Of a stretch of 64,000 nt of DNA, positions 39,007 to 61,937 are shown piece after piece. Position 1 is the stretch's first letter; each line of letters starts with the position of its first letter. This DNA is from Utricularia gibba (taxonomy: Eukaryota; Plantae; Magnoliophyta). Position numbers and translations under genes: made by a program. The DNA lies in contig CM007992.1 in assembly GCA_002189035.1 (NCBI GenBank), forward strand, positions 310,001-374,000, given 5' to 3'. The notes beneath the pieces are model-generated. The model was not told where the DNA came from. It did no database searches and saw only the letters and a program-made list of their open reading frames with translations.

Positions 39007-39806
39007 TTGAATATAGGGATGAATTAGAAAATTCGCATGTGTCAGAAAGATTGCATTAAAAAAATAATCACCCTATGTGTAAAATTTTTATTTTAATACG
39101 TAATAAATAAAATGATAGCGAAAAATTTTATAAATGATCTTGAATAGAGTTTTTTTTTTGTATAAAACCATCCATTTTTAATTGAGAAAAAAGAGTTATA
39201 TTCGTTTCATATGATATTTTAATTAATAATCCATTTAATTATTTATATTTAAATAAACATACATCTGTTTTTTTTTAGAGAAGAAAAAATTATGTTTCAA
39301 TTAAATTTTTTTCCATTTGTATTTAGATAAACATAAGTCTATAAAACAGTCTTATTATTATTTTTTTTGCTAGAGATCATGGAATCAAATGTTTTAAATT
39401 TCAACCAAATTTCAAGAAATTTTTTATTTCAAATTTTTTGATTCCAAAATTCTCCTGAAATTTAGTCATTTTCCCATGTAGGAAGACTCCATTTCTATAA
39501 TGCAGTCCAACTAGTTTTGTTCATGTAACCCTAAAATGTCAACTGCATGCCCCTTAAATTATTGTCCTAAGGATCTTGATTCATTCATTGTAAGAACCCT
39601 TACACAGAAGAAAAGATAAGCAGACACAAAGTCACAAAAAGTATGTACCTTGGTAGGCTTGAAGATCTATCTACCCTACAGAAGTAGAGAGCATATGAAT
39701 CACCAAGGAGAGCTACAAAAGAGTTATACTCCAAATCTGGTTGTCTTCGTCCTGGTCTCGGAGGCGCTGCATTGGGAGCTCGTAGTTTGGTGACGTTTCT
39801 GAAGTG

Positions 39807-40348
39807 GTGGTGAGCCATTTGAACCTCTTTCAGGTACCCTCAAACAACGATTCATTGGCTGTATGCGTTTACACTTTCCAGGATTTGTCGGGTGCCTCTG
39901 TTAATGCTAAATTTGGTTTTCTTATATTGTATAATGCAGGAGAAGCTTGGGAAAACTCAATGGGTTTCTGTGGTGCTTTCGAGTTTAAAGTATATGATTC
40001 TTGGTTCAGTTGCTTCGTTGCTTCTTGTTGAAAGATTTTGCTACCTATAAGGTTATCGATTTGGAGCTTTGGCCCTCTAGTGATTCCGCATTTGGTTGGC
40101 CCTCTGGTTCCTATACAATTTCCATCTACTTCGATCAATGATGGCAATCTGTCGACTATGGAGCGAGCTACTCCTCGAGTCTTGTTGATAGATGGCTGAC
40201 TCCTGTGGATGAACCTTGTAAGAATTCAACCACTGTCGGGATTCGATTTGATTTCCACATGTAGAAAATAATGACAGCAGCATGTTGATGTCCAAAGTTT
40301 GTTTTTTCAAGCACTGAATGAATCAGGGAAGCTTCATTATATCGGGGA
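39807..40348 (+). pseudogene. Truncated, frameshifted array copy (psi; closest to copy C)
   Basis: Start ATG changed to GTG at 39807; EKLGKTQWVS.., VDYGASYSSSLVDRWLTPVDEPCKNSTT recognisable; TM region deleted; homology ends at 40348 where the copy A leader begins. Confidence 0.85.
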
Positions 40349-40377
40349 GCTCACAGCAGGCCTGTATTTCTGAAGTG

Positions 40378-42178
40378 ATGGTGAGCAACAACGATACCAT
40401 TCAGGTACACTTGTAGAAGAATTTAGTTACTCTTTTAGGATTTTGAGGGCATATCTGTTAGTGCATTCTTTGATTTCTTATATCATTCCATGTAATTGCA
40501 GAAGAAATTTGGGAAAGTTCCATGGTTTTCTATGGTGAATTCACGATTAAACGAATTGACTCGTGGTTCATTTGGTGTTCTGCTTATTACCTGCTTCATA
40601 ATAAGTATTTTTTCGAAGTATTTTGCTACCTATAAGCCTATCGATTCAGAACTTTGGTCAAGACCTTACAGTAACTTGAGGTCTACTAACCCATTAGATC
40701 CTACCCAGTCTGGTTCAGCAACAACGAATGATAGCACTCTAAAACCTTGGATCTCAGCTGATTATGGAATGAACTACTCATCAAAACTTGTTGAGAGATG
40801 GCTGACGCCTCTTGGGGTTGAACCTTGTAAAAGTTCAAACACTGTGGAGATTAAATTTCTCTACTCAGAAAACAATGACAGCAGTATGATGTTATCAACT
40901 GGTGATATCCATGACTTAGTTTTTCAAGCAATTGATGAACCTGTGAATCCTCATTGTCTAGGGGGAGATTACTTTGAGATGGATCTTTCAGGAGAAAAAT
41001 GGAAATCCAGACCCCCAATACAGGATCTGGGAAATGGAACTTATACATTTTCTCTTCAAGTTCATCCTGATTTTGCTGGAGATTACAACTTGACCATTAT
41101 TCTCTTGTTTAGGCATTACGATGGTTTCAAAATTTCCACTGATGAATTTGTTTTTGACAAGGTTGTTCGTGTTATTCCTATTAAATTCTATGCATCTACA
41201 TCTCGATTACCAGAAATAACTCAGTGTAGAAGCAACGATTACTCGAAAGATGTTTGGTCTGGACGATGGACTCGTCATGCAAGAAATGATAGCTGTCCAA
41301 TTAGTGATGATGGAAGATACAGATGTCAGAAACCAGACTTCCCTTGTGAAAATCCATGGTGTAAAGGTCCATTAGGATCTATAGAAAGCAATGGGTGGGT
41401 GTACTCAGCTCACTGTTCATTCAAGATGTTTACCAAAACTGAAGCTTGGAAATGCTTGAAAAATCGATGGATTTTTTGGTGGGGTGACTCCAATCACTGC
41501 GATACAATACGTAACCTGCTTAACTTCATCTTGGATTTGAAATATGGCGAGATTCCCAGAATATTTGACAGCAACATCACCAATCCGGAAGACCCTTCAC
41601 AAGTAGTAAGATTCACCAGCATTTTCAACGGCCATCCAGAGCCACCCAAGAGCGGTGAGGGCTTGAACTCATTGAACCACCCACAGTACAGAACTCTGGG
41701 GAAGAGTTACTTTCATGGTGAAGAATTTCCAAACACGATCATCATGAATTCCGGCCTCCATGATTCAGGGTTTTGGCCTAATATCACCAGCTTTATCATG
41801 GGGGTGGAGTATGCCGCATCTTTTTGGACAGAGGTCTTGGATGAGGTACGACATAAAGGGGGGAGAAAACCAGAGATGGTGTACCGTACGACGGTGGCAG
41901 TAGGGGGATCCCATCGGCAGCAGAAGGTGAATCCTCAGAAGATGGAGGCGTACAATGGAGTGATGTTAGAGAAACTTCGAAAACACAGAATTATCGAGAA
42001 GATTGTTGATGACTTCGACATAACCTTTCCTTGGCACTATGACTACAGGTTTAGCGATGGAATTCACTATGAGCGCCCTCCTTCCAATACCCAGTGGGTG
42101 GACGCCATTGTTGGGCACCAGTACTTTGTGGATCTGATGCTTGCTCATATCCTCCTCAACACCATCTGCATTATATAA
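40378..42178 (+). CDS. Ig-like + SGNH/PC-esterase (NXPE-like) protein, copy A
   Basis: Exon 1 40378-40404 (MVSNNDTIQ), exon 2 40502-42178; TM helix, CLGGDYFE, DLGNGTY, GWVYSAHCSF, WGDSN, NSGLHD, SDGIHY. Confidence 0.88.
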
Positions 42179-43221
42179 CTTAACTTCCTTTTCTTTCATC
42201 ATCATCCTGATAGCATATTTATTCATTTTCGAAAATATTGATATGGTATTTTTGAAAATCGAGTTATTAAGTTTACATTATGTTTGTATCCATTTTTTAA
42301 AATCGTAATATTAAAATAAATATTATAAAATACATTTTAAATCATTTTCGAAATAAAACCGAATTTTGTCATTTACTTTTCTGGAGAAAAATGAAAAACA
42401 ATTTTACTTATTTTCGAAAACATTTATCCATTTACTAAAATGTCACATCATTATTTCCGAAAATGAGTAAATATAATTTGAGAAGTAGGTTGGAATAATG
42501 AAGTCAATCACTTATAATCTTTCCATTTCCATTCCTTTTTGCTCAGATCTGAGTTTATGAAGAACTCTAGTTACAAACAGCATTCACTCCTCCTTCCATG
42601 ATTCTTATGGTTCCCTTCACTATTTTTTTTTTATTATTGAGTGATCGTTTTGGTGATTTGAATGCTTAATTGGGGCAACTAATAATCAACTTTCAACTAC
42701 TCAATTTGGGCAAATAATCTAATAATATTAAAATATATTACTTCTTGTGGAAAATAAACTAATAATCATTAATGAATCAATATTACAAATCATTGCTTAA
42801 ATAACATGCAAGAAAACATAAGATTGGGATATTATTAAACATTACAAAAAAATAGGGAGTAAAAATTATCAATTTCTTTTAAAAAAATGGCATATTTTGT
42901 GAATTGACCAACTATTTACATTTTGTTTAAAAAAAAAGAATGAATGGAGAAAATACATGGGGATTGGTAGTGTAGAACGGCGTCCATCAATGCAACTATG
43001 GACTCTACCTACATACAACATTGGACTGAAGCATTAACTACAATAAACGATAAGTACAGAAAATGCAGCATAGCCGAACATCATCAATATTGACGATGAA
43101 GAGATGCTCACGTTGTACGGTCCAAGTGTAGCTTTCTTCACCTCAGTGTCTGATGTTTCCTGTTAATTTCAGTGCTTGGGATTCCATTGGGAGCTCACGG
43201 CACATCGGTGTTTACGAAGTG

Positions 43222-45020
43222 ATGGTGGGCGAGAACGATTCCTCTCAGGCACACTCGCAGAAGAATTTAGTGACTAATGTAGGATTTGGGAGGCGTAGTT
43301 GTTGAAGTGTTCTTTGCGTTCTTATATCGTGCCATGCAATGCAGGAGAAATTTGGGAATGTTACTTGGGGTTCTATGGTGGATTCGTGGTTAAAAGTGGT
43401 GACTTTTGGTTCATTTGCTGCTCTCCTTATTGCCTGCTTCATGATAAGTTTTCTTTCTAAGAATTTTGCTGCCTATAAGCTTCTCGATTCAGAATTCTGG
43501 TCAAGATCCTACAGTGACTGGAGGTCTGTTGGCCCTTTGGATCCTACCCATTCTCCTTCAGCTACGACAAATGGCAGCAATCTAAAACCTTGGATCTCGG
43601 TCGATTATGGAAAGAACTACTCGTTGAATCTTGTTGAAAGATGGCTGACTCCTCTTGGGGGTGAACCTTGTAAGAATTCTGAAACTGTAGGGATTAGATT
43701 TCTCTATTCAAAAAACAATGACAGCAGTATGTTGTTATCAACGGGTGATATCCATGATTTTGTTTTTCAAGCAATTGATGAAGCTGGGAATCCTCATTGT
43801 CTAGGAGGAGATTACTTTGAGACAGATCTTTCAGGAGAAAGATGGAAATCCAGACCCCCAATACAGGATCTGGGAAATGGATCTTATAAATTTTCTCTTC
43901 AAGTTCATCCTGATTTTGCTGGAGATTACTCTTTGACCATTACTCTCTTGTTTAGGGTTTATGATGGTTTCAAAATTTCCACTAGTGGATTTGTTTTCGA
44001 CGAGGTTGTTTGTGTTATTCCTATCAAATTCTATGCATCTACATCTCGGTTGCCCGAAATAGCCCAATGCAGAAGTAACGATTACTCGAAAGATGTTTGG
44101 TCTGGACGATGGACTCGTCATGCAAGAAATGAAAGCTGCCCAGTTAGTGATGATGGAAGATACAGATGTCAGAAACCAGACTTCCCTTGTGAAAATCCAT
44201 GGTGTAAAGGTCCATTAGGATCTATAGAAAGCAATGGATGGGTATACTCAGCTCATTGCTCATTCAAGATGTTTACAAAATCTGAAACTTGGAAATGTCT
44301 GAAAAATCAATGGATTTTTTGGTGGGGTGACTCGAATCACTGCGATACAATACGTAACCTCCTTAACTTCATCTTGGATTTGAGAGTTGTTGAAATTCCG
44401 AGGACATTCGACAAGATCATCATCAATCCAGAAGATCATTCACAGGTAGTAAGATTCACCAGCACCTTTAACGGTCATCCAAACCCAGGCGATGATAACC
44501 ATGGCTTGAACTCACTCAACAACCCAGAATACAGAAACATGTTGAAGAGCTACTTTCGTGGTGAAGTATCCCCAACACAATTATCATGAATTCAGGTCTC
44601 CATGATGCAGGGTTTTGGCCCAACATTAGCAGCTTCATCATAGGGGCGGAGCACGCGGCGTCTTTCTGGAGAGAGGTGGTGGATGGGGTACGGCGCAGAG
44701 GGGGGAGAGCACCGGAGATCGTGTACCGTACAACGGTGGCGGCGGGGGGATCCCATCGGAAGCAAAGGGTGAATCCTCAGAAGATGGAGGCATACAATGG
44801 AGTGATGTTGGAAAAACTTCGGAACCAGAAGATTGTTGGGAAGGCGGTTGATGACTTCGACATGACTTTTCCTTGGCATTTCGACAACAGGTGCAACGAT
44901 GGCGTTCACTATGGGCGCCGTCCTTCGAACAAGACGTGGATAGACGGGATAATTGGACACCAGTACTTTGTTGATCTCATGCTTGCACATGTCCTCCTCA
45001 ATGCCATCTGCCTCAAATGA
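43222..45020 (+). CDS. NXPE-like protein, copy B (1-nt deletion near 44574)
   Basis: Exon 1 43222-43248 with GC donor; ORFs 43339-44589 and 44586-45020 rejoin with one added base at CCAACACA; WGDSN, NSGLHD, NDGVHY intact. Confidence 0.85.
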
Positions 45021-46607
45021 GAGTATTTTTTATTTTGTTTTACTTAGGTGTGTTTTTAAAAAAAATTAAAATTTATTTTTATTTTTCAAAAATAAAAGTA
45101 ATTTATTTTAGAATACTATCAATTGTAAAAATAATTTTATCAAAAAAAATACTTTTCAAATTATACTATAAAAATTATTTTTGGAAAAGTAAAAAGTAGT
45201 TTATTTTTACTTTTTATTTCTATTTTTTTTAAAATAATTTTCAAAATTTAAAATAATTTTCAAAAATTTTTCAAAACACTGCTTTAGTATATAAATATAG
45301 TTGTGTGGATTCGGCGATTCATGAATTCGAATGAAATTAGTGATTTGAAAAATTATGGATACGTTGAGAAATTTCAGTTTATAATATTTAAATTAATAAA
45401 TTATTTTTTAAAATATTAAAATAAAATAATTTTTAATCACATATTGAAAATTCACAAAAAAACAAACAAAAAAATTTAGGTAATAATCGGTAAATGATGA
45501 TCATCGAACTTTGAATGATCATAGTTAAATAAGTTATGTAAATACTTTACAAATCATTCATATATTAAAAAAATACATCTATCAAATAGATGTCATTCTT
45601 AATGCATGTGTTTGAAAAGTTAAAATCATAATTTTTTTTTCGAAAATGATCGTAAACAATTTTATTATCAATAAATGATTTTTTTTATTTTAAACTTGTT
45701 CGAATTTAATCGAGGAAGATGTAAAATTGTTCATAATATATGTACATAAAAGTCTTTGATACCCTACTAGCATACTACTACCCTTTATAGCTGCAAGTGG
45801 TATATTCTTTTGTTCCATTTTTAAAAATAAATGAAATAATACTCCTATTAAATGAAAAAGAATAAACTAGGATTGAAGTCAACTTTCCCAAACTTCACAA
45901 TAAATAGAGTTTGTTCATAGTGAGTTGCAAAGATGGATATAGTGTGTTTTAAGACACATTAATTAATAACACAGTTGAATTATTTACGTGTAGATAAACT
46001 CATCCTAAATACTTAAAATTAAAAGTTAGTTTGATACATGATAACTGTTTATTTAAAATAAATTTTCGTCTAATGTATTTAAAATACATAAAAAAAACTA
46101 AGATTTCATTGATTCATAAAAGTAATTAAGAATTTCGGATTTTTTTCGAAATAAAATGTTCATGAAACTTCCTCCAAATTTGATCATTTTTTCTTGAGAT
46201 TTTTCTGGAATCAAATGAACCCTAAAAGTCCCACCGGCATTGACAGTTGGATGCTCACTTTCCAATGTATGAGGACTCCATTTCTATAATGCGGTCTACT
46301 TATTTTTGTTCAAGTAACCCTTCAAGTCAACTGCATGTCACTAAAATATTGTCCTAAGTATCATGATTCGTTTTGTTTCATCACGAAACATAGGTAAGAA
46401 CCCTTAAATAGAAGAAGAATAGCTGAGTAGACAAGGTCAGAATATGATCCTTTGTAGGTTCACATATATTATTTGCCCTACACAGATAGAGAGCATATGA
46501 ATCACCAAGGAGAGCTACAAAAGAGAGATACTACAACTTGGTTGTCTTCATCTTGATTCGGGTTGCGCTGCATTAGGAGCTCATATTTTGGTGCTGTCTC
46601 TGAAGTG

Positions 46608-48326
46608 ATGGTGAGCCAACCGGAACTACTTGAGGTTCATTCATATTGCACAATGCAGGAGAAGTTTTGGAAATGGGTTTCTATTGTGAATTCGAGCTTA
46701 AAATATGTGATTCTTGGATCATTTTCTATGTTGCTTATTGGCTGCTTCATTATGAGCATTTTTTCCAAGGATTTTGGTATCTATAAACTTATCGATCCAG
46801 AGTTTTGGTCAAGATCCTATAGTGATGAGAGGATGGTTAGCCCTTTGGATCCTACACATTTTCCTCCTGCTATGATCAATGGTAGCAATCTTGTACCTTG
46901 GATCTCCGTCGACTACGGAGCGAACTACTCCTCGAATCTTGTTGACAGATGGCTAACTCCGGTGAATGAACCTTGTAAGAATTCACCTACTGCGGGGATT
47001 CAATTTCCTTATGTAGAAAACAATGACAGCAGCATGTTGTTGTCTACTGGTGATGTTCACAAGTTTGTTTTCCAAGCAGTTGATGAATCAGGGAAGCTTC
47101 ATTGTATAGGAGGAGATTACTTTGAGATTGATCTTTCAGGAGAAAGATGGAAATCTAGGCCCCCGATACAGGATCTAGGAAATGGATCTTACAAATTTTG
47201 GTTTCAAGTTCATCCTGATTTTGCTGGAGACTATAACCTAAACATTACTCTCTTGTTCAGACACTATGAGGGCCTCGAGCATTTCACTGAAAAATACTTT
47301 TTCAATAAAGTTGTTCTTATGATTCAGATTAAATTCTACACATCATTGTCCCAGCTGCCCGAAATAGCTCAATGCAGAAGCAACGATTACTCGAGAGATG
47401 TTTGGTCTGGACGGTGGACTCGTCATGCAAAAAATGATAGCTGTCCAATTAGTGATGATGGGAGATACAGATGCCAAGAGCGAGACTTCCCCTGCGAAAA
47501 ACCATGGTGTGAGGGTCCATTAGGATCTATAGAGAGCAACGGGTGGGTGTATTCAGCCCACTGTTCATTCAAGATGTTTACCAAGCGTGAAGCTTGGAAT
47601 TGCTTGAAAAACCGATGGATCTTTTGGTGGGGTGACTCAAATCACTTAGATACAATACGCAACCTGCTTAATCTCGTCCTGGGTTTCCAGTATGGTGACA
47701 TTGATAGAACATTTGAGAGCTTCATCATAAATCCCGAGAACCATTCACAAGTAGTGAGAATCACCAACATCTTCAACGGCCATGCACACCCGTACGAGAA
47801 TCATGAGGGCTTGAACTCGCTGAAAAATCCAGAATACAGAGCCCTTTTGAAAAGCTACTTCTCGGGTGAAGTAATCCCAGACACGATATTCATGAACACA
47901 GGTCTCCATGACGGAAGGTTTTGGCCCAACATTACCAGTTTCATCAGCGCAGCAGAGTATGCAGCATCTTTCTGGAGAGAGGTGATGGATGAGGTACGAC
48001 GTGGAGGGAGGAGACCACCGGAGATCGTGTACCGTACCACAATTGCATCATCGGGATCCTCTCGGAGATTTGATTCTAATCCTCAGAAGATGGAGGCGTT
48101 CAATGGAGTGATGCTGGAGAAACTTCGGAAACACAAAGTTATCCAGAAGGTGGTGGATCACTTCGACATGACCTTTCCTTGGCACTATGACAAAAGATGT
48201 AGCGATGGTTTCCACTACGGGCGCTTGCCCATAAAGTCGATGTGGGTTGATGGCAATATCGGGCACCAATACTTCGTTGATGTAATGCTCGTTCATATCC
48301 TCTTGAACACCATTTGCCTAAAATAA
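46608..48326 (+). CDS. NXPE-like protein, copy C (single uninterrupted ORF)
   Basis: ATG 46608 reads through a 24-nt intron remnant into EKFWKW..; WGDSN, NTGLHD, SDGFHY. Confidence 0.9.
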   Translation: MVSQPELLEVHSYCTMQEKFWKWVSIVNSSLKYVILGSFSMLLIGCFIMSIFSKDFGIYKLIDPEFWSRSYSDERMVSPLDPTHFPPAMINGSNLVPWISVDYGANYSSNLVDRWLTPVNEPCKNSPTAGIQFPYVENNDSSMLLSTGDVHKFVFQAVDESGKLHCIGGDYFEIDLSGERWKSRPPIQDLGNGSYKFWFQVHPDFAGDYNLNITLLFRHYEGLEHFTEKYFFNKVVLMIQIKFYTSLSQLPEIAQCRSNDYSRDVWSGRWTRHAKNDSCPISDDGRYRCQERDFPCEKPWCEGPLGSIESNGWVYSAHCSFKMFTKREAWNCLKNRWIFWWGDSNHLDTIRNLLNLVLGFQYGDIDRTFESFIINPENHSQVVRITNIFNGHAHPYENHEGLNSLKNPEYRALLKSYFSGEVIPDTIFMNTGLHDGRFWPNITSFISAAEYAASFWREVMDEVRRGGRRPPEIVYRTTIASSGSSRRFDSNPQKMEAFNGVMLEKLRKHKVIQKVVDHFDMTFPWHYDKRCSDGFHYGRLPIKSMWVDGNIGHQYFVDVMLVHILLNTICLK

Positions 48327-49039
48327 GCTAGTGTTTTTCAATGATTTATTTTTTTAAAAAAAATGTTTCATATAGAGTTTTGTTATTAAATACACTTCAT
48401 TTCAATATCTTGAAAAAAAAATAAATCGCGCTTGGTTGAATTTCTTCATTTTGACATTCAGACCAGTGGGTGAAATCACATTGTATGAGTATCCACTTGA
48501 GCCATAGAATGATTTGTTTTAATTAAATAGTCAGATTTTCTATGTCGGTAATAGTGGGGGTTAGCCCCCCAGGGAAGACCCCCAGAGTTTAAAAAAATGA
48601 CATATTTTAAAATTTAAGGGTTAATTTTTTTTCTTGTTTACAATTTTCCATTTTTTATCAATAATATTTATATAGAGTAAAAACTATCAATTTCTTTTAA
48701 AAAAAATGTCATATTTTGTGATTTAACCAATTATTTACATTTAAAAGAAAGAAAGATAAATGAAGAAAGTACATGGGATTGATAGTATAGAACGGCGCCC
48801 ATGAATGCAGCTATGGACTCTACATGGAACATTGGAATGAAGCATTCACTACAAGAAACCCTAAGCGTAGAAAATGCAACGTAGCTGAAGATCATCAATA
48901 TTGACTATCGGGAGACGCTACACGATATATTTATATGGTACAAGTGTAGCTCCCTGTACTTTGTTTTCGCATGTTTCATGTTAATTTCAGTGCTTTGGAT
49001 TCCATCACGAGCTCGCAGCACATTGGCGTTTCTCAGGTG

Positions 49040-50876
49040 ATGGTGGGGAAGAACGATCCCTCCCAGGTACACTCACACAAGAATGAGTTTATTTTTATAT
49101 AAGTATAATTACAAGTGATAAAAAGATGGTATAGTGTGAAACTATGTTCTATGACTCTTTCATACGAAAATTTATTGATGTGTTTTTTGCTTTCTTATAT
49201 CGTGCCATGCGATGCAGGAGAAATTTGGGAATGTTACGTGGGGTTTTATGGTGGATTCGTGGTTAAAAGTGTTGACTTTTGCTTCATTTGCTGGTCTGCT
49301 TGTTGCCTGCTTCATGATCAGCTTTTTTTCAAAGGATTTTGCTACCTATAAGCTTATCGATTCAGAATTCTGGTCAAGAGCTTACAGTGACCGGAGGTCT
49401 GTTGGCCCTTTGGATCCTACAACAAATCACAGCAATCTAAAACCTTGGATCTCGGCCGATTATGGAAAGAACTTCTCGTTGAAATTTGTTGATAAGTGGT
49501 TGACTCCTCTTGGGGATGAACCCTGTAAGAATTCAACAACTGTGGGGATTAGATTTCTCAATCAAAAAATCAATAACAAGAGTGTGTTGTTGTCAACTGG
49601 GGATATCCATGACTTTGTTTTCCAAGCAATTGATGAAGCTGGGAAGGTTCATTGTCTAGGGGGAGACTACTTTGAGATGGATCTTTCAGGAGGGAGATGG
49701 AAATCCAGGCCCCCGATACAAGATCTGGGAAATGGATCCTACACGTTTTCGCTTCAAGTTCATCCTGATTTTGCTGGAACTTACAACCTCACCATTATTC
49801 TCTTGTTCAGACACTATGAAGGCCTTCAGCTTTCCACTGGAAAATTCTTTTTCGACAAGGTGGTTGGTGTGATTCCAATTGAATTCTACACATCCTCGTC
49901 CCAGTTGCCCAAAATAACCCAATGCAAAAGCAAGGATTACTCCAGAGATGTTTGGTCTGGACGATGGACTCGTCATGCAAGAAATGATAGTTGTCCAATT
50001 AGTCAGGATGGAAGATACAGATGCCAGAAACGAGACTTTCCCTGTGAAAAGCCATGGTGTGAAGGTTCATTAGGATGTATAGAGAGCAACGGGTGGGTGT
50101 ATTCAGCTCACTGTTCATTCAAGATGTTTACCAAGAATGAAACTTGGAAATGCTTGAAAAACCGATGGATTTTTTGGTGGGGAGACTCGAATTACATGGA
50201 TACAATACGTAATCTGTTTAACTTCGTCTTGGATTTTAACTATCGTGATATTGATAGAATATTTGACAGGAACATCACCAATCCCGATGATCATTCACAG
50301 GTAGTGAGATTCACCAACATTTTCAATGGCCATGCAGATCCACATAAGAATAGTGAAGGCTTGAACTCATTGAACAAACCAGAATATAGAGCACGTTTGA
50401 AAAGCTACTTCTCTGGTGAAGTAATCCCAGACACGATCTTCATGAACTCAGGTCTCCATGATGGGAGGTTTTGGCCCAACCTTCCCAGTTTCATCGGTGC
50501 AGCAGAGCATGCAGCATCTTTCTGGAGGGAGATAATGGATGAGGTACAACAGAGAGGGATTAAAACACCGGAGATTGTGTATCGTACAACGGTGGCAGCC
50601 GGGGGATCGGCTCGAAAACAGAATCTTAATCCTCAGAAGATGGAGGCATACAATGGAGTGATGTTGGAGAAATTTCGAAAACACAGAATTGTCGACAAGG
50701 TTGTTGATGACTTCGACATAACCTTTCCTTGGCACTATGACAACAGGTATAGCGATGGTATTCACTATGGGCGCGCTCCTTCGAATACTACGTGGGTGGA
50801 CGACATTGTTGGGCACCATTACTTCGTCGATCTGATGCTTGTCCATATCCTCCTCAATACCATCTGCGTCACATAA
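49040..50876 (+). CDS. NXPE-like protein, copy D
   Basis: Exon 1 49040-49066 (MVGKNDPSQ), intron 49067-49217, exon 2 49218-50876; WGDSN, NSGLHD, SDGIHY. Confidence 0.9.
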
Positions 50877-51455
50877 CTTACCTTTCTTCTCTTTGTATGG
50901 CGGGCGATGTAAAAACAACAAAGGCATTGCTCATCATCCCGAGAAGGAGGCTGGAATTACAATCACTCATCATCTCTTCATTTCCATTTCTTTTTGCTCA
51001 GATCTGAGTTTATGAAGAACTGCAGTTACAATCAGCATTCACTCTCTCCTTCCATCATTCTTGCGGCTCCCTTGTCTATTTTTGTTCTTATGAGTGATCG
51101 TTTTGGAGATTTGAATGCTTTAAGGACACGATCAAATTGCATTCGCATCTCGAGAGTAGGGTCTCGCAACTGGGGCAAAAAAGTCGCTGAGAATTTCTTT
51201 ACCCCATCATCATCATCATCTCTCCCCCTGTTTCAAGAATCAATTTTTACTTCTGGTAATGAATACTCGAGCATGATCGTTCTATATCAGACTGAAATTC
51301 TGCAAGGCGACTTATTTCCCAGGTAGTTAGCTTCTTTTGAATCTCTTTCCGGTGACTCATCTCCATCCCTTGTTTTCTCTACTGAACCAGAAGCTATGGA
51401 GCGTTGTACTCCCAGCTTCTCTGAAGCCAGGGGTTCATCCATTTTGTTTGCTTTT
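50876..51455. repeat. 3' flank of copy D, near-identical to 54668-55255
   Basis: ATAACTTACCTTTCTTCTCTTTGTATGGCGGGCGATG ... CATCATCATCATCTCTCCCCC ... GGGTTCATCCATTTTGTTTGCTTTT shared; the two diverge abruptly after 51455/55255. Confidence 0.9.
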
Positions 51456-52867
51456 CACATTGTTTGGTAGGTGGTTTAATAATAATTTTAAAGTGTATTT
51501 TGTTGAACATGTGCGTATGATGAGAAGTTTTAAATTTTAAAATCGGTTTATGATGTCTACAGTTTTATTAAAAATTAGTAAGATGACATGCTTTATATTA
51601 AATTAAATCATATATTTATTGCTAATTTACCTTTATTTCTACTTAAATTCTGAATAAATATAAAATTAATCATTTAAAATGATAATTCAAACATCTTTTC
51701 ATTACAAAATATAACACATATAAATCCTCTACTAAACACATTCTAAACCTAAAAACTACAAAGCATGGGTGTGGGTGCAGAGATACGGATAAGACAAGCT
51801 TAAAAGCATCCTATTAAGATACGATTCGGATACATTTATTTAAAATTTATTATTTTATTATTAAATACATTTACTTTCAATTTTTCTAAAAGGTTTGTTA
51901 TTGTTAATATGATCAATATGGCCATTAAGTGCCAATTAAATACCATTTGTTTTTTATTAGAAATACTTTTTAAATAAAGAATATATGGCTAACGCTTAGC
52001 TTTGGCATGCCCATAAGTGCCTTTTAAATGAGCCAAAAGTGTTGGTCAAACAATTTATTTATGTTTCCATAAATTTCAACAACTCGATTTTGGTAAATAA
52101 TTAAATAAAGTTATCTTTATATAGATATCTAAGAATTAGATGGATGATTTTGAAAAGTAAACATAATACAGTTATTATGTGTAAAAAATAATTACTTTAT
52201 ATGTGAAATTTTAGTATTAATGTGTGAAATAATGTTAGAATGATTAATTTTCAAAAAAAACCCAAATTAGATTCCATTGCACTTCGAAGCAATGAGGGTG
52301 AATAAAAAAAAATGTACCACTTTCTTTTATTAAAATATGATATCATTTATTGATAGTTGAATATGATGTTGTAATTATAAAAAATTTTTTAGAAGAATAA
52401 AATAATAATAACCAGAAATTATATATCATATTATTAATAGATATATTTATACAGATAGAGAGTAAAAACATGCAAGAAAACCTGAAATTGGGAAAGTATT
52501 AAATATTATGAAAGAGAGAGAGTAAAAATTATCAATTTCTTTTAAAAAAATGACATATTTTGTGATTTGACCAACTATTTACATTTAAATGAAAAAGATA
52601 AATGGAGAAAATACATGGGAGGGTTTGATAGTGTAGAACGGCGTCCATCAATGCAACTATGGACTCTACATGTAAAAGCATGCTACAAGAAACGATAAGT
52701 ACAGAAAATGCATACAGCGAAATCGAACATCAATGCTGACGCTCAACGATATATTTTATACGGTCCAAGTGTAGCTTCCTTCACCTCGGTTTCCGATGTT
52801 TCCTGTTAATTTCAGAGCTCCATGGGATTCCATTGGGAGCTCACGCCACGTCGGCGTTTCTGAAGTG

Positions 52868-54668
52868 ATGGTGAGCGAGAACGATCCCTCTCAGGTAGAG
52901 TTACGCAAGAATTTAGTGACTGTAGTAGGATTTGGAGGGCCTATTTGTTAATGTGTTCTTTGCTTTTTTATACCATGCCATGCAATGCAGGTGAAATTTG
53001 GGAGAGTTACGTGGGTTTCTTTGGTGGATTCATGGTTAAAAGTGTTGACTTTGGGTTCATTTGCTGCTCTGCTTATTGCCTGCTTCATGATAAGTCTTTT
53101 TTCGAAGGATTTTGCTATCAATAAGCTTATCGATTCAGAATTCTGGTCAAGAGTCTACAGTGACTGGAGATCTGTCAGCGCTTTGGATCCTACCCATTCT
53201 CATTCAGCTACGAAAAATGGCAGCAATGTAAAACCATGGATCTCGGCTGATTATGGAAAGAACTACTCGTTAAATCTTGTTGATAGATGGCTGACTCCTC
53301 TTGAGGGTGAACCCTGTAAAAATTCAAAAACTGTCGGGATTAGATTTCTCAATCCAAAAATCAATAACAAGAGTGTGTTGTTGTCAACTGGGGATATCCA
53401 TGACTTTGTTTTCCAAGCAATTGATGAAGCTGGGAAGGTTCATTGTCTAGGAGGAGACTACTTTGAGATTGATCTTTCAGGAGGGAGATGGAAATCCCGG
53501 CCCCCGATACAGGATTTGAGAAATGGATCTTATATATTTTCGCTTCAAGTTCATCCTGATTTTGTTGGAAATTACACTCTGACCATTACTCTCTTGTTCA
53601 GACATTATGAAGGCTTCCAGCTTTCCACTGAAAGATTCTTTTTCAACAAGGTGGTTGGTGTGATTCCGATTGAATTCTACACATCCTCGTCCCAGTTGCC
53701 CAAAATAACCCAATGCAGAAGCAAGGATTATTCCAGAGATGTTTGGTCTGGACGATGGACTCGTCATGCAAGAAATGATAGCTGCCCAGTTAGTGATGAT
53801 GGAAGATACAGATGCCAGAAACGAGACTTCCCTTGCGAAAAGCCATGGTGTGAGGGTCCATTAGGATCTATAGAGAGCAATGGATGGGTATATTCAGCTC
53901 ACTGTTCATTCAAGATGTTTTACTAAAAATGAAGCTTGGAAATGCTTGAAAAACCGATGGATTTTTTGGTGGGGAGACTCCAATCACTTGGATACAATAC
54001 GTAACCTGCTTAACTTCATATTGGATTTCAACTATGGTGATCTTGATAGAAAATTTGAGAGCAACATCACCAATCCCCAGGATCATTCACAAGTATTGAG
54101 ATTGACCAATATCTTCAATGGCCATGCAGATCCATACAAGAACAATGAGGGTTTGAACTCATTGAACAGTCCAGAATGTAGAGCACATTTGAAAAGCTAC
54201 TTCTCAGGTAAAGTGATCCCAGACACAATCTTCATGAACTCAGGTCTTCATGATGGAAGATTTTGGCCTAACATTACCAGTTTCATCGGTGGAGCCGAGC
54301 ATGCAGCATCCTTTTGGAGAGAAGTGATGGATGAGGTACGATATAGAGGGTTAAAACCACCGGAGATTGTGTACCGTACAACGGTGGCAGCTGGCGGACT
54401 CTCTCGAAAGCAAAATCTTAATCCTCAGAAGATGGAGGCGTACAATGGAGCGATTTTGGAGAAACTTCGGAAGTATGCAGTTGTCAGGAAGGTGATTGAT
54501 GATTTCGACATAACCTTTCCTTGGCACTATGACAACAGGTGCAGCGATGGTATTCACTATGGGCGCATTCCTTCAAATACCAAGTGGATGGACAACATAG
54601 TTGGGCACCAGTACTTCGTCGATCTGATGCTTGTCCATATCCTCCTCAATACCATCTGCGTCACATAA
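52868..54668 (+). CDS. NXPE-like protein, copy E (1-nt insertion at 53918-53921)
   Basis: Exon 1 52868-52894 (MVSENDPSQ); ORFs 52985-53926 and 53880-54668 join if ATGTTTTACT is read as ATGTTTACT; WGDSN, NSGLHD, SDGIHY. Confidence 0.85.
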
Positions 54669-57341
54669 CTTACCTTTCTTCTCTTTGTATGGCGGGCGAT
54701 GTAAAAACAACAAGGCATTGCTCATCATCCCGAGAACGAGGCTGGAATTACAATCACTTATCATCCTTCCATTTCCATTTCTTTTTGCTAAGATCTGAGA
54801 TTATGAAGAACTGCAGTTTACAATCAGCATTCACTCTCTCCTTCCATCATTCTTGCGGTTCCCTTCACTATTTTTTTTATTGAGTGATCGTTTTTGTGAT
54901 TTGAATGCTTAAAGGTTATGATCAAATTGCATTTGCATCTCGATAGTTGGGTATCGCAATTGGGGCAAAAAAGTCGTTGGTCATCCATGAGAATTTCTTT
55001 ACCCCATCATCATCATCATCTCTCCCCCTGTTTCAAGAATCAATTTTTACTTCTGGTAACGAATACTCGAGCATGATCGTTCTATATCAGACTGAAATTC
55101 TGCAAGGCGACTTATTTCCCAGGTAGTTAGCTTCTTTTGAATCTCTTTCCGGTGACTCATCTTCGTCCCTTGTTTTCTCTACTGAACCAGAAGCTATGGA
55201 GCGTTATATTCCCAGCTTCTCTGAAGCCAGGGGTTCATCCATTTTGTTTGCTTTTGATAAGTTTTCAAAGCTGATGCTAGACTTTTAATGATTAGTATAC
55301 TTTTTCTCCTTTGTTACATGGTGCCAGGTTTACAGTTGTGTGGATATACTGATCTTTCAGGAGTGTCCCTTTTTCATAGTCAGAAAATAGCAACTACACC
55401 ACCCCACTTAAAACTTATGCGACCTAACCAGTAGGATTCTGTGGAGTACCCATTACTTCGTAAAAGGATGACCTTATCACCTTAGCCAAAAAGGTGCATT
55501 TCTGCCTCCTTCGGTCTGTTACTCCTGAATCTGAGAAGGTAATAGGGATTCCCAATAGCATTTAGTGTCCAGAATTGTTGAAAACATGGCAAGAAAAAAA
55601 GTAGGCTCACCAGAGTTATTTTAAAAAAATGTGAAGCTTGTGTTTTAAAGGATTCAGTCCTCCCAAGAAGCCTAAAAAGGAGCTGGTTTCACTGAGATTA
55701 AAGGAGAGGAACATTGCATGTTTTCCAGTTTTCTCTTTATGTAGGGGACCATTTCAGTAGTATTTGGTTTGGTTTGCAATTACACCTGTGCAACTACCTC
55801 CAATTTTCACTTCTGCAACTTTTCTGATACACACTTGAAGAAAAGCAACCAGCCCAACCCCACCCTCATTGCTCATCGACAACTAACAAATAAGTTCCAT
55901 TTTCAACCCTTTTGACAGGTCCACAAACACAACACGTTGATAGATATCTTTGCATATGTGGAGAATGGGTCTGCACTTTGCTGGAATGAGTGGTTCTTGG
56001 CTGAACCAGCAACATCTTTTCCCTTCACACGCTTTTGTTTCTGTTGAAAAGTTCCAAAGAAACGTTGAGAGATATTGTTGGAAGGCAAATATGCCAGTGA
56101 CCCTAGAGCATACCCTCTAAACAAAGGGTCCACCTTCGCATGCTGCATGACAGTGGCAATAATGGTTTGTCCTTTGCAGATTCCTTCTTCTGAGGCATTC
56201 ACATTTGCATTTATTTTGTTTGTCTCTCGAGTCCCAACCCTTTGAAACATTTGCTGCAAACTGCAGAAACTCAACCACTAATCTCATCTCCAATCCTGGC
56301 TGCTGCTTCTGCTCCTCCTCCTGCTCCTGCTCATCACCATAACCTCATTTCTCCATTCTTCATCCCTCTTCTTCCACTTTCTAACCTGCACTCCAGTCTT
56401 CCCTTCCATTCTAGCTACTGGGAACCTTGCTTCTCACTAAAATGCCAGAGAAATGACCACCCAATGGTTCTCCTTATCTGCTAGCCATCCTTCCAGGCAC
56501 AGAATCATACTTCTGCTTCCTCATTCACAGAGGGGTAAGAAACAAATTGCCCCTACAGTCCTAAACTGTAATTTACTGTTTGTCCTAAGTGCAGGCAAGG
56601 ATGATGCTCTAACATTCTTTCCCCCCCACCTTTCTTTAATGGGCATGTTGTGGTCAGGGGTAGTTTTGTAAATGATAGGATATGATTGGTTGTTTATTGG
56701 GCCGGCCCATGTTGGTGGTCAGAGGGGACGCGGCATTCGTAGTTTGACCAGCCACGCCTTCTTTTTAACTAACCATGGTTAAGCCATAGCAGAGCCCGAG
56801 GAGCTCATCACCCGAAGAAGACAATTTTGGGAAAGAAATTACAGAGGGGTTTGGTTAGGGAGGGAGTTTGAGAAACACTAAAATCCATAAACAATGGGGA
56901 GCTTTTAAGTCTTCCAAAACAAAAAGATAAGAAAGAGGAGGAACAGAAGCACCGCATCCTCAAGCCAATTGAAGTGAGAGTTGGGTGAAAAACTTCTGCA
57001 TCCCCACTCTTCATTTCTTCTTCCCAGTGCCAGTCTGCAATTCGTTCGCTTCAGTGGTAACTTTATTTTCTCTCTCTGCCTCACACTCTTTCTTCTCTCT
57101 TACACAACAAATACTGCAGTTTTCTCGGTTTCCATCTCTGAAATAGAGGAAAGCCGAGACTGAGTAGAGGAGGTTAAATGTCGCTCAACAGTCGCCTCAT
57201 AGTCTCTCTTTCTTGTGCTCTCTTGTGAGTGCTTTCTGGGAGGGAGGGAGCTGACCCGTCTTCTTCTTTCTTTCTTCAGATCTATCCCATTTGATTTGCT
57301 ATTACTTGGGTTCGATCTGAAAAGTGTTTACAGTGTTTAAG

Positions 57342-59110
57342 ATGAGTAAAGAAGAGTTCTTGAAGACCCAGGTGAGCTTCTCTCGTACTCAGAGCATGTA
57401 GCGAAGCTTCATTCGGTTGTTTTTTTTTAATAAAGCTTTTACCTTGTGTCCTCTGGCTTTGCTTGTGACTGCAGACTTGTGTTCTTAAAGTCAATATTCA
57501 CTGTGAAGGGTGCAAGGCAAAGGTGAAGAAAGTGTTGCACAAGATCGATGGTACTGAATGGTTAAATTACTTCGCTTCGACTGTCACTCATTGATGTTGT
57601 TCAGGAAAAAATAAAGGGGGCTTGGTCTTTGTCAAAAAGCCAAAATCTTTAGCCATTTTTGCTGATTCTGATGGAAGTTTTGTGCGATGGGCTAAGTTCT
57701 TTTCTTTATCTTTTGCTTTTTCCTTTGTTTTTTCATGATTTTGTGTAGGTGTGTACACCACCAGCATAGACTCAGAGCTTGGAAAGGTGACAGTTTCAGG
57801 CAATGTTGACCCTGCGACACTGATCAAGAAGCTCAACAAGAAGGGAAAATTTGCAGAAATTTGGGGAGCAACGACGAAGAATCAGCTACCCAGCAATGTC
57901 AATAACCAACACCAGATGAAGAATCTGCAAATTGGAAATGGGAAAGGCGGAAATGGCAAGAATCAACCACCCCAAAAAGGAGCAGCGGTGAACTCTCAAC
58001 CGAAGGGTGGAGTTGTTGCTACTCAAGCTCAGAATCCGCAGCTTCAGCAACTTCAACAGATGAAAGTGTTGCAAGATCTGAAAAATCAGATGAAAGTGGC
58101 AGCGAATGACAAGGATCAGAAACCGGCGAAGTCGAATTTGCTGGAGGAGGAAGGACTGAGCGACGATGAGTTCGACACTGACGACGAATTCGACGATTAC
58201 GACGATGATGATGAGGATGAGTTCGAGGATGAAATTGGAGCTCCCCCAGTTAATAAAATGAAGCCGGTGATGGGAAATCCTCCGCAACAGATGGCGAATA
58301 TGATGATGAAGAACATGTTGAATGGTCAGCAGCAACAAGGGATGATGAAAAATGTTTCTAATGGTGCCAATCCCAAGAAGCCGATCGTCGTCGGGAATAT
58401 TCCGGCACAGTTCAACGCCGGAGGCGGCAACGTCGGTGGGAAGAAAGGCGGCGGCGGGGGGAATAATAGTAATTGTAACAATAATAATAATAGCAACGGG
58501 GGTGCTGGCAAAAATGGCGGTGGAAAAGGTGGCAAAAATGGAGGCGGAGCTCTGCCGCAGGATGGAAAAAACGGTGGTGGCGGTGACAACAAGAACGCCG
58601 GGGGCACGGCAGCGCCGGTGGTGGGCCTCCCAACGCGAGCAGTTTCGCGGGTAACGGATCCAAGAAAGCGATGATGAATGATGGACATCATGGCATGCCA
58701 AACATGATGCCCATGAATGCTGCTGTTACCGGGATGGGACCCACCGGTCATATGGCCATGGCCCACCCTCACATGACCCAGATGCCCAACAATCCCAGTC
58801 CCCAACCCTTCCCTCCCGCCGCCGGCGCCTACTTCCCACCCGCCGGAGCCGACCAAATCGGCGGAATCCCCTACACCCAGCAACAGCAGTACGCCGCCAT
58901 GATGATGAGCATGCAACAGGCCAACGGAAACGAGCGGTTCCAACCGATGGTGTACGCTCGGCCACCCCCGCCGTCAGCTACATGCCGCCGTCGTACCCTC
59001 CCCAACCTTACCCTTACTACTACCCGTACCCGCCGCCGAGATCCGGTGACCCCGCCGACGAGTACGCCATCTTCAGCGACGAAAACACTCAGAGCTGCAA
59101 CATAATGTGA
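57342..59110 (+). CDS. Heavy-metal-associated isoprenylated plant protein (HIPP32/33-like), two apparent -1 frameshifts
   Basis: Exons 57342-57371, 57475-57550, 57749-59110: [10 protein letters not shown]|[25 protein letters not shown] (HMA CxxC); C-terminal [12 protein letters not shown] (CaaX) restored by adding one base at G5 58600-58604 and one at C5 58965-58969. Confidence 0.9.
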
Positions 59111-60926: not shown

Positions 60927-61937
60927 CTAGGTGAGATCAGAGCTCTGAGATGCCTCACCTCGAAGAGCTTGCTCGTATGTCTGAAGTTGGCGCAGGAAGC
61001 CGGGGTTCGGACACACGCAGGGCCTTCTCAGCTTCACGTAGTCCAGAGCTTCCGATAAGCTCAGGCTGTTCTTGAACATCAGATAGGCTACAACGATCGT
61101 CGCGCTGCGGAAACGGGTGAGTAGGAAGGATGAGTCATGACAGTGAATGGACACGAAATCGATGTGGTGGATGGGACAGCATCGCACCTTCGTGATCGGC
61201 CGGCGAAGCAGTGAACCAGGACAGCGCCGTCGTTGCCTCTTGCTTCTTCTATGAAGCCAATGCACTCATCGAAAAACTGGGATAAGACCACATCTTCCCT
61301 ATCCGCCACTGCGTCGATCGGAAAACGAAACCAGCGCAGGAATGTATCAAACCACAACGGAAATCAAAGCCAAATGAGCAAGGATGGAGGCACAGCATTT
61401 CCTATGAAACCATGTAAACAAAACAAGCAGCTCCTTTGCTTTTCACACCATTGCACTTCCCTTTAGGATTGCATCAGAAACCACTTCGAAAAAACTGTCA
61501 AGTTTCTAGATTTATCTTATTCCATCAAGGACTATCAAGAAATGAAAAGACCGAGACGAAAAGAATCATGCATCACAGACAGTTCATCACTTCTAGATTT
61601 GGGTCGAGCTTAGAGCAAGACAGAAACCTTACCTGAAATGGTTTTGTATGTGAACTTCTCAGGATAAAGAGGCTGGAAATAGTTGGCTACAGTCAATATA
61701 TGCGTGATGTTAAACCTTCTGAGAGCATGCCAATTCTCAGCAGCTCCAAGGGAGCCAAGATAAAGACCCTAAGAAGAACAAAAAGAGAATGAAAACAAGA
61801 AGCCAAACACATAACTGGTGCACAGCAACGGATACCTTCTCAATTTCGCATGGAACGTTATCTTCCTTAACAAATCTTCTCGCGTTAACCACTTTCAGCA
61901 ATGCGGACACACGCTCTACGTACGAGTCATCCTCCAT
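60927..61937 (-). CDS. Dual-specificity protein phosphatase (DsPTP1/MKP2-like)
   Basis: Exons 61937-61836, 61768-61633, 61308-61188, 61104 onward: GLYLGSLGAA, ITHILTVA, VLVHCFAGRSRSATIVVAYLM, CPNPGFLRQL. The 3' end may use a further 63-nt intron (60958-60896), ending at about 60870. Confidence 0.93.

Follow-up and report, generated by a model that had tools for sequence, protein, structure and literature searches.

A 64,000-nucleotide stretch of the Utricularia gibba genome (contig CM007992.1, positions 310,001 to 374,000 of the forward strand; called the window below, with positions counted from its first nucleotide) carries a tandem array of genes, copies A to E and a relic, whose products belong to a plant protein family of no assigned function. 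What these proteins do, and why they are encoded side by side several times, are the questions raised by this locus. A sequence-only reading had taken them for Golgi O-acyltransferases with the layout of the animal NXPE proteins, multiplied by a lineage-specific expansion, and we followed up this proposal by homology searches, structure prediction, phylogenetic analysis and alignment of public sequencing contigs. The results lead us, with moderate confidence, to regard the proteins as members of a land-plant-wide family of single-pass type II proteins that are likely glycan O-acetyltransferases of the secretory pathway, like NXPE1, CASD1 and XOAT1, and the array as the product of tandem duplication after the split from Genlisea.

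In plants, the O-acetylation of wall glycans and of secreted glycans is at present credited to TBL proteins, together with RWA and AXY9. In animals, NXPE1 has been identified as a sialic acid O-acetyltransferase (PMC12216134; bioRxiv 10.1101/2024.12.24.630288; bioRxiv 10.64898/2026.05.20.726592), in line with the sequence-only reading. NXPE1 resides in the Golgi, forms an acetyl-Ser355 intermediate from acetyl-CoA and 9-O-acetylates N-acetylneuraminic acid (Neu5Ac) (bioRxiv 10.1101/2024.12.24.630288; PMC12216134). By cryo-electron microscopy, its esterase domain superposes on XOAT1, and a ping-pong mechanism is proposed for both (bioRxiv 10.64898/2026.05.20.726592). A study from 2010 described the PC-esterase family together with its FAM55 (NXPE) branch and the fusions to filamin-like immunoglobulin (Ig) domains (PMC2824669). 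The NXPE-type PC-esterase architecture is already known and its plant branch is uncharacterised; in the literature searched, we found no paper linking NXPE to plants.

Fold and profile comparisons relate the plant family to NXPE

The closest database homologues of the window proteins were 56-63% identical at best, were all plant proteins, and were labelled 'hypothetical', 'F28L1.9' (At3g06150), 'cytochrome P450 family protein', 'Gelation factor like' or 'immunoglobulin-like'. When 1.8 billion representative proteins were searched with a profile, 322 relatives were retrieved, which include monocots, ferns, lycophytes, mosses and liverworts, plus the euglenozoan Diplonema. For the distant representatives, cluster look-up named almost only Diplonema japonicum, and when a profile was made of the most distant members and used as the query, seven proteins were retrieved, none of them a named animal NXPE.

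An AlphaFold model of copy D residues 86-554, built on an alignment of 96 diverse homologues, reached a predicted local distance difference test score (pLDDT) of 95.6 and a predicted template modelling score (pTM) of 0.94. It replaced a first model from a 27-sequence alignment (pLDDT 65, below 50 in the DGxH region), although the Foldseek ranking was the same with both. When the model was compared with the Swiss-Prot models by Foldseek, the top 11 matches were all NXPE1-4 entries (E 1e-16 to 4e-15, TM-score 0.49-0.59), spanning model residues 4-467 at 12-14% identity, and CPED1, CASD1, TBL30, PCED1B and AXY9 ranked after them. The best solved structure was XOAT1, with a VIA-align Z of 16.4 and a root-mean-square deviation (rmsd) of 3.4 Å over 245 residues (model 151-469 versus chain 134-486); dozens of SGNH structures were found at Z 9-12, with numerous peptidoglycan O-acetyltransferases and SGNH esterases reaching Z 10-12. 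The sequence-only reading had named NXPE1 and XOAT1 as the proteins for comparison, and with NXPE1-4 ranking first and XOAT1 as the best solved match, the SGNH/PC-esterase fold that it had anticipated was recovered behind a filamin-type Ig domain. The NXPE1 structure 9pja was not among the PDB matches listed by Foldseek and VIA-align, so that the link to this entry rests on the profile search described below and on the AlphaFold DB models.

Filamin domains matched model residues 22-147, the TRIM3 filamin domain (7o0b) with a Z of 11.4 and an rmsd of 1.6 Å, and a profile of the 96 sequences matched the Dictyostelium gelation factor (1wlh) with an E-value of 5.3e-20. Single window proteins did not reach Pfam Filamin. 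The same profile matched human NXPE1 (PDB 9pja) with an E-value of 4.6e-7 in three collinear stretches: the filamin module fell on residues 71-205, including GGD(F)...NNGTY; 'CL.gk....GDS' fell on 342-361, which puts the GDS on Ser355; and 'iD.FDmT' fell on 510-526. Against XOAT1, the E-value of the profile was 0.24. In the ESM Atlas, the neighbours were NXPE3 clusters and cnidarian clusters with mixed Filamin, NXPE4_C and Neurexophilin matches. The NXPE layout noticed from the letters alone is thus borne out by the full-length Foldseek match and by the placement of the GDS on Ser355 of NXPE1. We conclude that the plant family is a true remote homologue of NXPE with the same domain order. The comparison also suggests that the N-terminal 'neurexophilin' part of NXPE is a derived filamin-type Ig domain.

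Between the Ig domain and the catalytic domain lies a Cys-rich segment. In the structural alignments, XOAT1 starts at model residue 151, within this segment, and TBL30 and TBL41 at 141-143; for this reason, the segment probably corresponds to the N-terminal lobe of TBL proteins. The earlier statement that the proteins have no PMR5N domain therefore holds by Pfam, but the segment aligns with the region of the TBL N-terminal lobe.

The domain features of copy D, all on the + strand, were located as follows.

49260-49328, + strand: membrane helix, predicted signal anchor (hydropathy scan; helix in the first AlphaFold model)
49530-49907, + strand: filamin-type Ig domain with GGDYFE and DLGNGSY (family profile, VIA-align)
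49917-50150, + strand: Cys-rich segment (aligned structurally with the N-terminal lobe of XOAT1/TBL)
50151-50873, + strand: SGNH/PC-esterase-like domain (GDS 50181-50189, NSGLHD 50445-50462, DGIH 50754-50765)

In the numbering of copy D, GGDYFE is at residues 150-155, DLGNGSY at 171-177, GDS at 324-326, NSGLHD at 412-417 and DGIH at 515-518. GGDYFE, the Cys-rich segment, WGDSN, N(S/T)GLHD and DGxHY are kept in 5/5 copies, as the sequence-only reading had listed them; DLGNG(S/T)Y, also on that list, is altered in copy E (DLRNGSY) and present in all the others. Each readable copy has 9-11 N-glycosylation sequons, 11 Cys after the N-terminal helix, and one such hydrophobic helix in the hydropathy scan, in agreement with the single transmembrane helix per copy proposed before. 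Across the 96 homologues, with identity down to 20%, G324-D325-S326 and D499 are invariant, and H416, D417, R458, N473, D515, G516 and H518 are conserved in at least 90%. In the secondary structure of the model, a strand occupies residues 233-239 with the GDS at 239-241, and the DGIH at 430-433 stands ahead of a helix at 453-467. As modelled, the GDS after the first catalytic strand and the DGIH loop before the last helix correspond to the SGNH arrangement.

Like the plant proteins, animal NXPE1-4 consist of an N-terminal anchor, a beta-sandwich with GGD(F/Y)...NGTY, a linker lobe and an esterase-fold domain, and C-x-x-x-x-CL..K....GDS is common to both; unlike in NXPE1-4, the N-terminal module of the plant proteins is a canonical filamin repeat (E 5e-20). 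XOAT1/ESK1/TBL29 and the TBLs resemble the family in having the GDS and DxxH, in being of type II topology and in the Cys-rich lobe that precedes their catalytic core, whereas the additional filamin Ig domain and the post-GDS context GDSNHxDTxRN set the family apart from the TBLs. The N-terminal domain of CASD1 superposes on the catalytic domain (E 1e-8, rmsd 3.8-5.8 Å, ~260 columns), with the GDS and DxxH motifs in both, but CASD1 lacks an Ig domain and carries a multi-pass acyltransferase domain at its C-terminus. The filamin/ABP280 repeat, known from gelation factor and TRIM proteins, occurs here as a single luminal repeat fused to an enzyme rather than as a cytoskeletal rod.

Layout of the array and state of the copies

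A tblastn search with copy D as the query detected five + strand paralogues and one partial match in the window.

39807-40338, + strand: relic; degenerate first exon (ATG to GTG), ~165 N-terminal codons, frameshifts and stops
40378-42178, + strand: copy A; mini-exon 40378-40404, predicted intron 40405-40501, main exon 40502-42178
43222-45020, + strand: copy B; mini-exon 43222-43248 with GC donor, main exon from 43345, second ATG 43339
46608-48326, + strand: copy C; open reading frame intact, upstream ATG 46608, second ATG 46653
49040-51515, + strand: copy D; mini-exon 49040-49066, intron 49067-49217, main exon 49218-50876, 3′ untranslated region to about 51515
52868-54668, + strand: copy E; mini-exon 52868-52894, main exon from 52991, second ATG 52985

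The duplicated DNA is wider than the coding parts, and the array extends over roughly 39.5-55.3 kb. The unit of D matches that of E at 89% across 2.3 kb, and the upstream flank of the relic (39466-39817) matches DNA upstream of copy C; the coding nucleotide identity between copies is 78-89%. The relic represents the promoter-proximal part only and ends where the upstream region of copy A starts. Its identity was 49% and 33% in two frames by tblastn and 65% to unit B over 486 nucleotides (nt) by blastn, and its frame breaks are visible in the three-frame translation.

The condition of the copies differs. Copy D, with its second ATG at 49212, is intact, and copy C is the most divergent and carries NTGLHD. 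Copy A has TTG at 40496 in place of the downstream ATG ('MQEK') of the other copies and is readable (567 aa) only when the mini-exon is spliced on. Copy B has lost one base pair after 44567, so that the frame is lost just upstream of NSGLHD, and it is a pseudogene in this assembly. In copy E, an extra T at 53918 causes a frameshift. When public contigs were aligned over 49000-54999, this T was present in the contigs of DNA run X3 and missing from the contig of DNA run X6, which is another accession with many single-nucleotide polymorphisms versus the window. This result indicates that copy E is a recent pseudogene whose state is polymorphic between accessions. The readable copies are therefore C and D, and A if spliced. 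Thus the five paralogues and the relic were found at the position that the sequence-only reading had given for the array, but to call all five full-length is an overstatement: B and E are frameshifted, and D alone is backed by RNA.

In the same alignments, contigs of RNA run X7 and of DNA runs X3 and X6 join position 54987 back to 51188, and one X7 contig joins 50972 to 54839. These joins indicate that the 3′ flanks of D and E (50972-51251 and 54839-54987) share near-identical segments, and they reflect either a structural difference between accessions or a collapse in short-read assembly. Two antisense open reading frames, 44592-44990 and 50448-50927, lie wholly inside copies on the opposite strand and were treated as shadow frames.

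A spliced mini-exon and transcription of copy D

Upstream of the main exon, an invariant ATG was found in 5/5 copies ('GTGATGGTG'), within a 27-nt mini-exon coding for MV(S/G)xND..Q. A contig of RNA run X7 joins the mini-exon of copy D to its main exon, from 49066 to 49218, across a 151-nt GT..AG intron, and this splice links the mini-exon in frame to 'EKFG...'. The genes are thus not strictly intronless. Splicing was observed for copy D only, and introns of 96-151 nt are predicted in A, B, D and E. Copy C is without most of the intron, and its upstream ATG is in frame unspliced. Because the invariant upstream ATG in the mini-exon is common to all five copies, the TTG at the second start of copy A is probably of little consequence.

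The start of the gene is arranged differently in other species. Orthologues from Paulownia, Lycium and Capsicum begin with an unbroken 'M-x-S-S-Q-M-(P/S)-(E/K)-K', and this upstream Met is present in frame in Sesamum as well. In the array, the insert sits between the 'SQ' and the second Met (49040-49217 in D, 40378-40501 in A, 43222-43344 in B, 46608-46658 in C and 52868-52990 in E). Since the start is unbroken in other asterids, the intron looks like an insertion in this lineage, that is, a probable lineage-specific intron gain as judged from these alignments.

Contigs of RNA run X1 match copy D at 49228-51515 without differences and stop short of the flanks; nothing in this run matches intergenic DNA or copy E, and the DNA runs cover the whole aligned region. 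The share of sampled words of copy D was 0.97 in X1 and 0.95 in X2. The X1 and X7 contigs together demonstrate that copy D is transcribed and spliced.

Origin of the array

A tree of 129 sequences groups the five copies in a single clade with a support of 100; the sister of this clade is Genlisea aurea M569_15407, with a support of 99, which places the genome in the Lentibulariaceae. The stem of this clade is long, 0.46 substitutions per site, and the Genlisea branches are long too. Core Lamiales have two paralogue clades with about two genes per species. In Sesamum, Buddleja and Paulownia, no second copy lies in the 10 kb to the left or right of the gene, and the paralogues are spaced by 45 kb in Lycium and 96 kb in Capsicum, indicating that a compact array of five copies is not the norm. 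Because the five copies form one clade next to the Genlisea gene, the expansion is assigned to this lineage on phylogenetic grounds. These results uphold two further points of the sequence-only reading, namely that the expansion is lineage-specific, arrays not being the norm in the relatives examined, and that the homologues are low-copy and carry P450 names, as seen from about two genes per species and from the labels 'F28L1.9' and 'cytochrome P450 family protein'.

Pairwise ratios of nonsynonymous to synonymous substitution (dN/dS) between copies were 0.23-0.41 at dS 0.27-0.75, and dN/dS was lowest, 0.12, in the Cys-rich segment. These values indicate that the duplications are old and have been under purifying selection, B and E having broken only recently.

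By tblastx, the DNA that flanks the orthologues in Paulownia and Buddleja had no neighbours in common with the window, so that synteny is of no help here. A gene with a VTT domain (SNARE-associated Golgi protein) follows the orthologue in Buddleja and Paulownia (L003 16620-21719; L005 13760-19755), and none was detected in the window; the label 'SNARE associated Golgi protein family' of a Heracleum homologue may stem from a merged gene model. Downstream of the array, two further candidate genes were noted by eye. The open reading frame at 57751-59105 (+) has a heavy-metal-associated-like start followed by a long low-complexity sequence rich in Gly, Asn and Gln, and is possibly a gene with a heavy-metal-associated (HMA) domain of the HIPP-like type. 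Fragments at 60927-61357 (-) contain a 'HCxxGxxR' motif (VLVHCFAGRSRR), which suggests exons of a dual-specificity phosphatase.

Proposed function and competing explanations

The acetyltransferase activity, the Golgi location and the glycan acceptor are proposed here from homology. By analogy with the characterised enzymes, Ser326 of the GDS would be activated by His518 and Asp515 of the DGxH and would be acetylated by a donor. The resulting acetyl-enzyme would then hand the acetyl group to a hydroxyl of a Golgi-made glycan, bound at an acceptor site that would owe its shape to the Ig and Cys-rich parts. As for the array, one of the two Lamiales paralogues would have duplicated in tandem after the Genlisea split, giving five copies and a stump, and birth-and-death turnover would have followed, with the recent frameshifts in B and E.

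Several observations weigh against this interpretation. The window proteins scored 13.2-14.4 bits (E 0.03-0.07) with the Pfam model NXPE4_C (PF24536), below its gathering score of 27 bits; at E<=0.01, this model was matched by 9/45 family members, and the sole one to pass was the Diplonema member with 28.3 bits. The weak matches of the window proteins and the Diplonema match count at the same time as support for the relationship with NXPE. No match to Neurexophilin (PF06312), PC-Esterase (PF13839) or PMR5N (PF14416) was found at E<=1 with three copies. In the profile comparison with NXPE1, whose corresponding residues would be Asp526 and His529, the alignment ends at 526, short of the His, and does not resolve the DxxH region. 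The acceptor must also differ from that of NXPE1, since sialic acid is not known from plants. In the literature searched, At3g06150 comes up in two contexts only, as an unknown protein in a membrane fraction from poplar and, in cotton, as a hub gene labelled 'P450'. We also compared 144 positions at which conservation among 120 other homologues is at least 97%: each copy is changed at 4-9 of them, whereas those homologues are changed at 1.0 on average; part of this excess may be a lineage-wide rate effect, because the Genlisea branches are long too. Finally, among the RNA runs listed, a small and anonymous set, none contained copies A-C, which is not proof of silence. With two copies frameshifted and no RNA run for A-C, much of the array may be decaying.

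This last point leads to an explanation of the array that we rate only a little short of an even chance, in which the duplication has no adaptive meaning and a functional copy D stands amid silent or dying duplicates as a result of neutral birth and death. The relic and the two frameshifted copies, the polymorphic frameshift of E, the finding of D alone in RNA runs and the excess of changes at conserved positions all fit this explanation, whereas the dN/dS values at the dS observed argue for long purifying selection, including B and E before they broke; the catalytic motifs are intact in 5/5 copies, and the RNA sampling is small and from undisclosed tissues. A different question is whether the proteins add acetyl groups at all or are O-acetyl esterases that trim wall or secreted glycans. 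The Z of 10-12 to SGNH carbohydrate esterases (acetyl-xylan esterases, the peptidoglycan O-acetylesterase Ape1 and a sialic acid esterase) and the conserved block-III-like Asn of NSGLHD are compatible with an esterase, as is the fact that the PC-esterase family was first predicted to consist of esterases (PMC2824669). Nevertheless, the proteins nearest in fold and profile are NXPE1, CASD1 and XOAT1/TBL, each of them a transferase, and XOAT1 gives a Z of 16.4 versus 12.1 for esterases, so that we regard the esterase reading as unlikely.

A Ser-His-Asp site working on something other than a glycan, be it a small metabolite, a lipid or the side chain of a protein, or with an acyl group other than acetyl, has a slim chance in our judgment. 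SGNH enzymes are chemically versatile and the plant family is only 12-14% identical to NXPE, but the characterised members of the PC-esterase branch all act on glycans (PMC2824669), and a luminal part that is N-glycosylated, rich in Cys and equipped with an Ig domain fits Golgi enzymes that modify glycans. That the proteins are cytochrome P450s, as database names have it, has a negligible probability: the names 'cytochrome P450 family protein' are its only source, and we rejected the label in view of the absence of any P450 Pfam match at E up to 1 and of an unrelated fold, Ig plus SGNH-like. Taken together, glycan O-acetyltransferases of the secretory pathway remain the reading that we prefer for the family.

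Implications

A more far-reaching proposal, which we put forward as rather improbable speculation, is that the family forms a third class of Golgi glycan O-acetyltransferases, neither TBL nor AXY9, that shares a common ancestor with the animal sialate enzymes. Such enzymes may act on the 3-deoxy-D-manno-octulosonic acid (Kdo) or 3-deoxy-D-lyxo-heptulosaric acid (Dha) of rhamnogalacturonan II (RG-II), on mucilage or on arabinogalactan, and the expansion in this family of carnivorous plants would have diversified the acceptor specificity for trap or gland secretions.

At the level of the family, the analysis points to a second PC-esterase branch in every land-plant lineage sampled, with about two genes per species that are often mislabelled P450. 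The function of NXPE was solved only recently, and the link to NXPE1 makes the plant family a concrete, testable candidate for O-acetyltransferases. For U. gibba itself, the locus offers a probable recent intron gain within a very compact genome, and the array provides a natural series of diverged paralogues.

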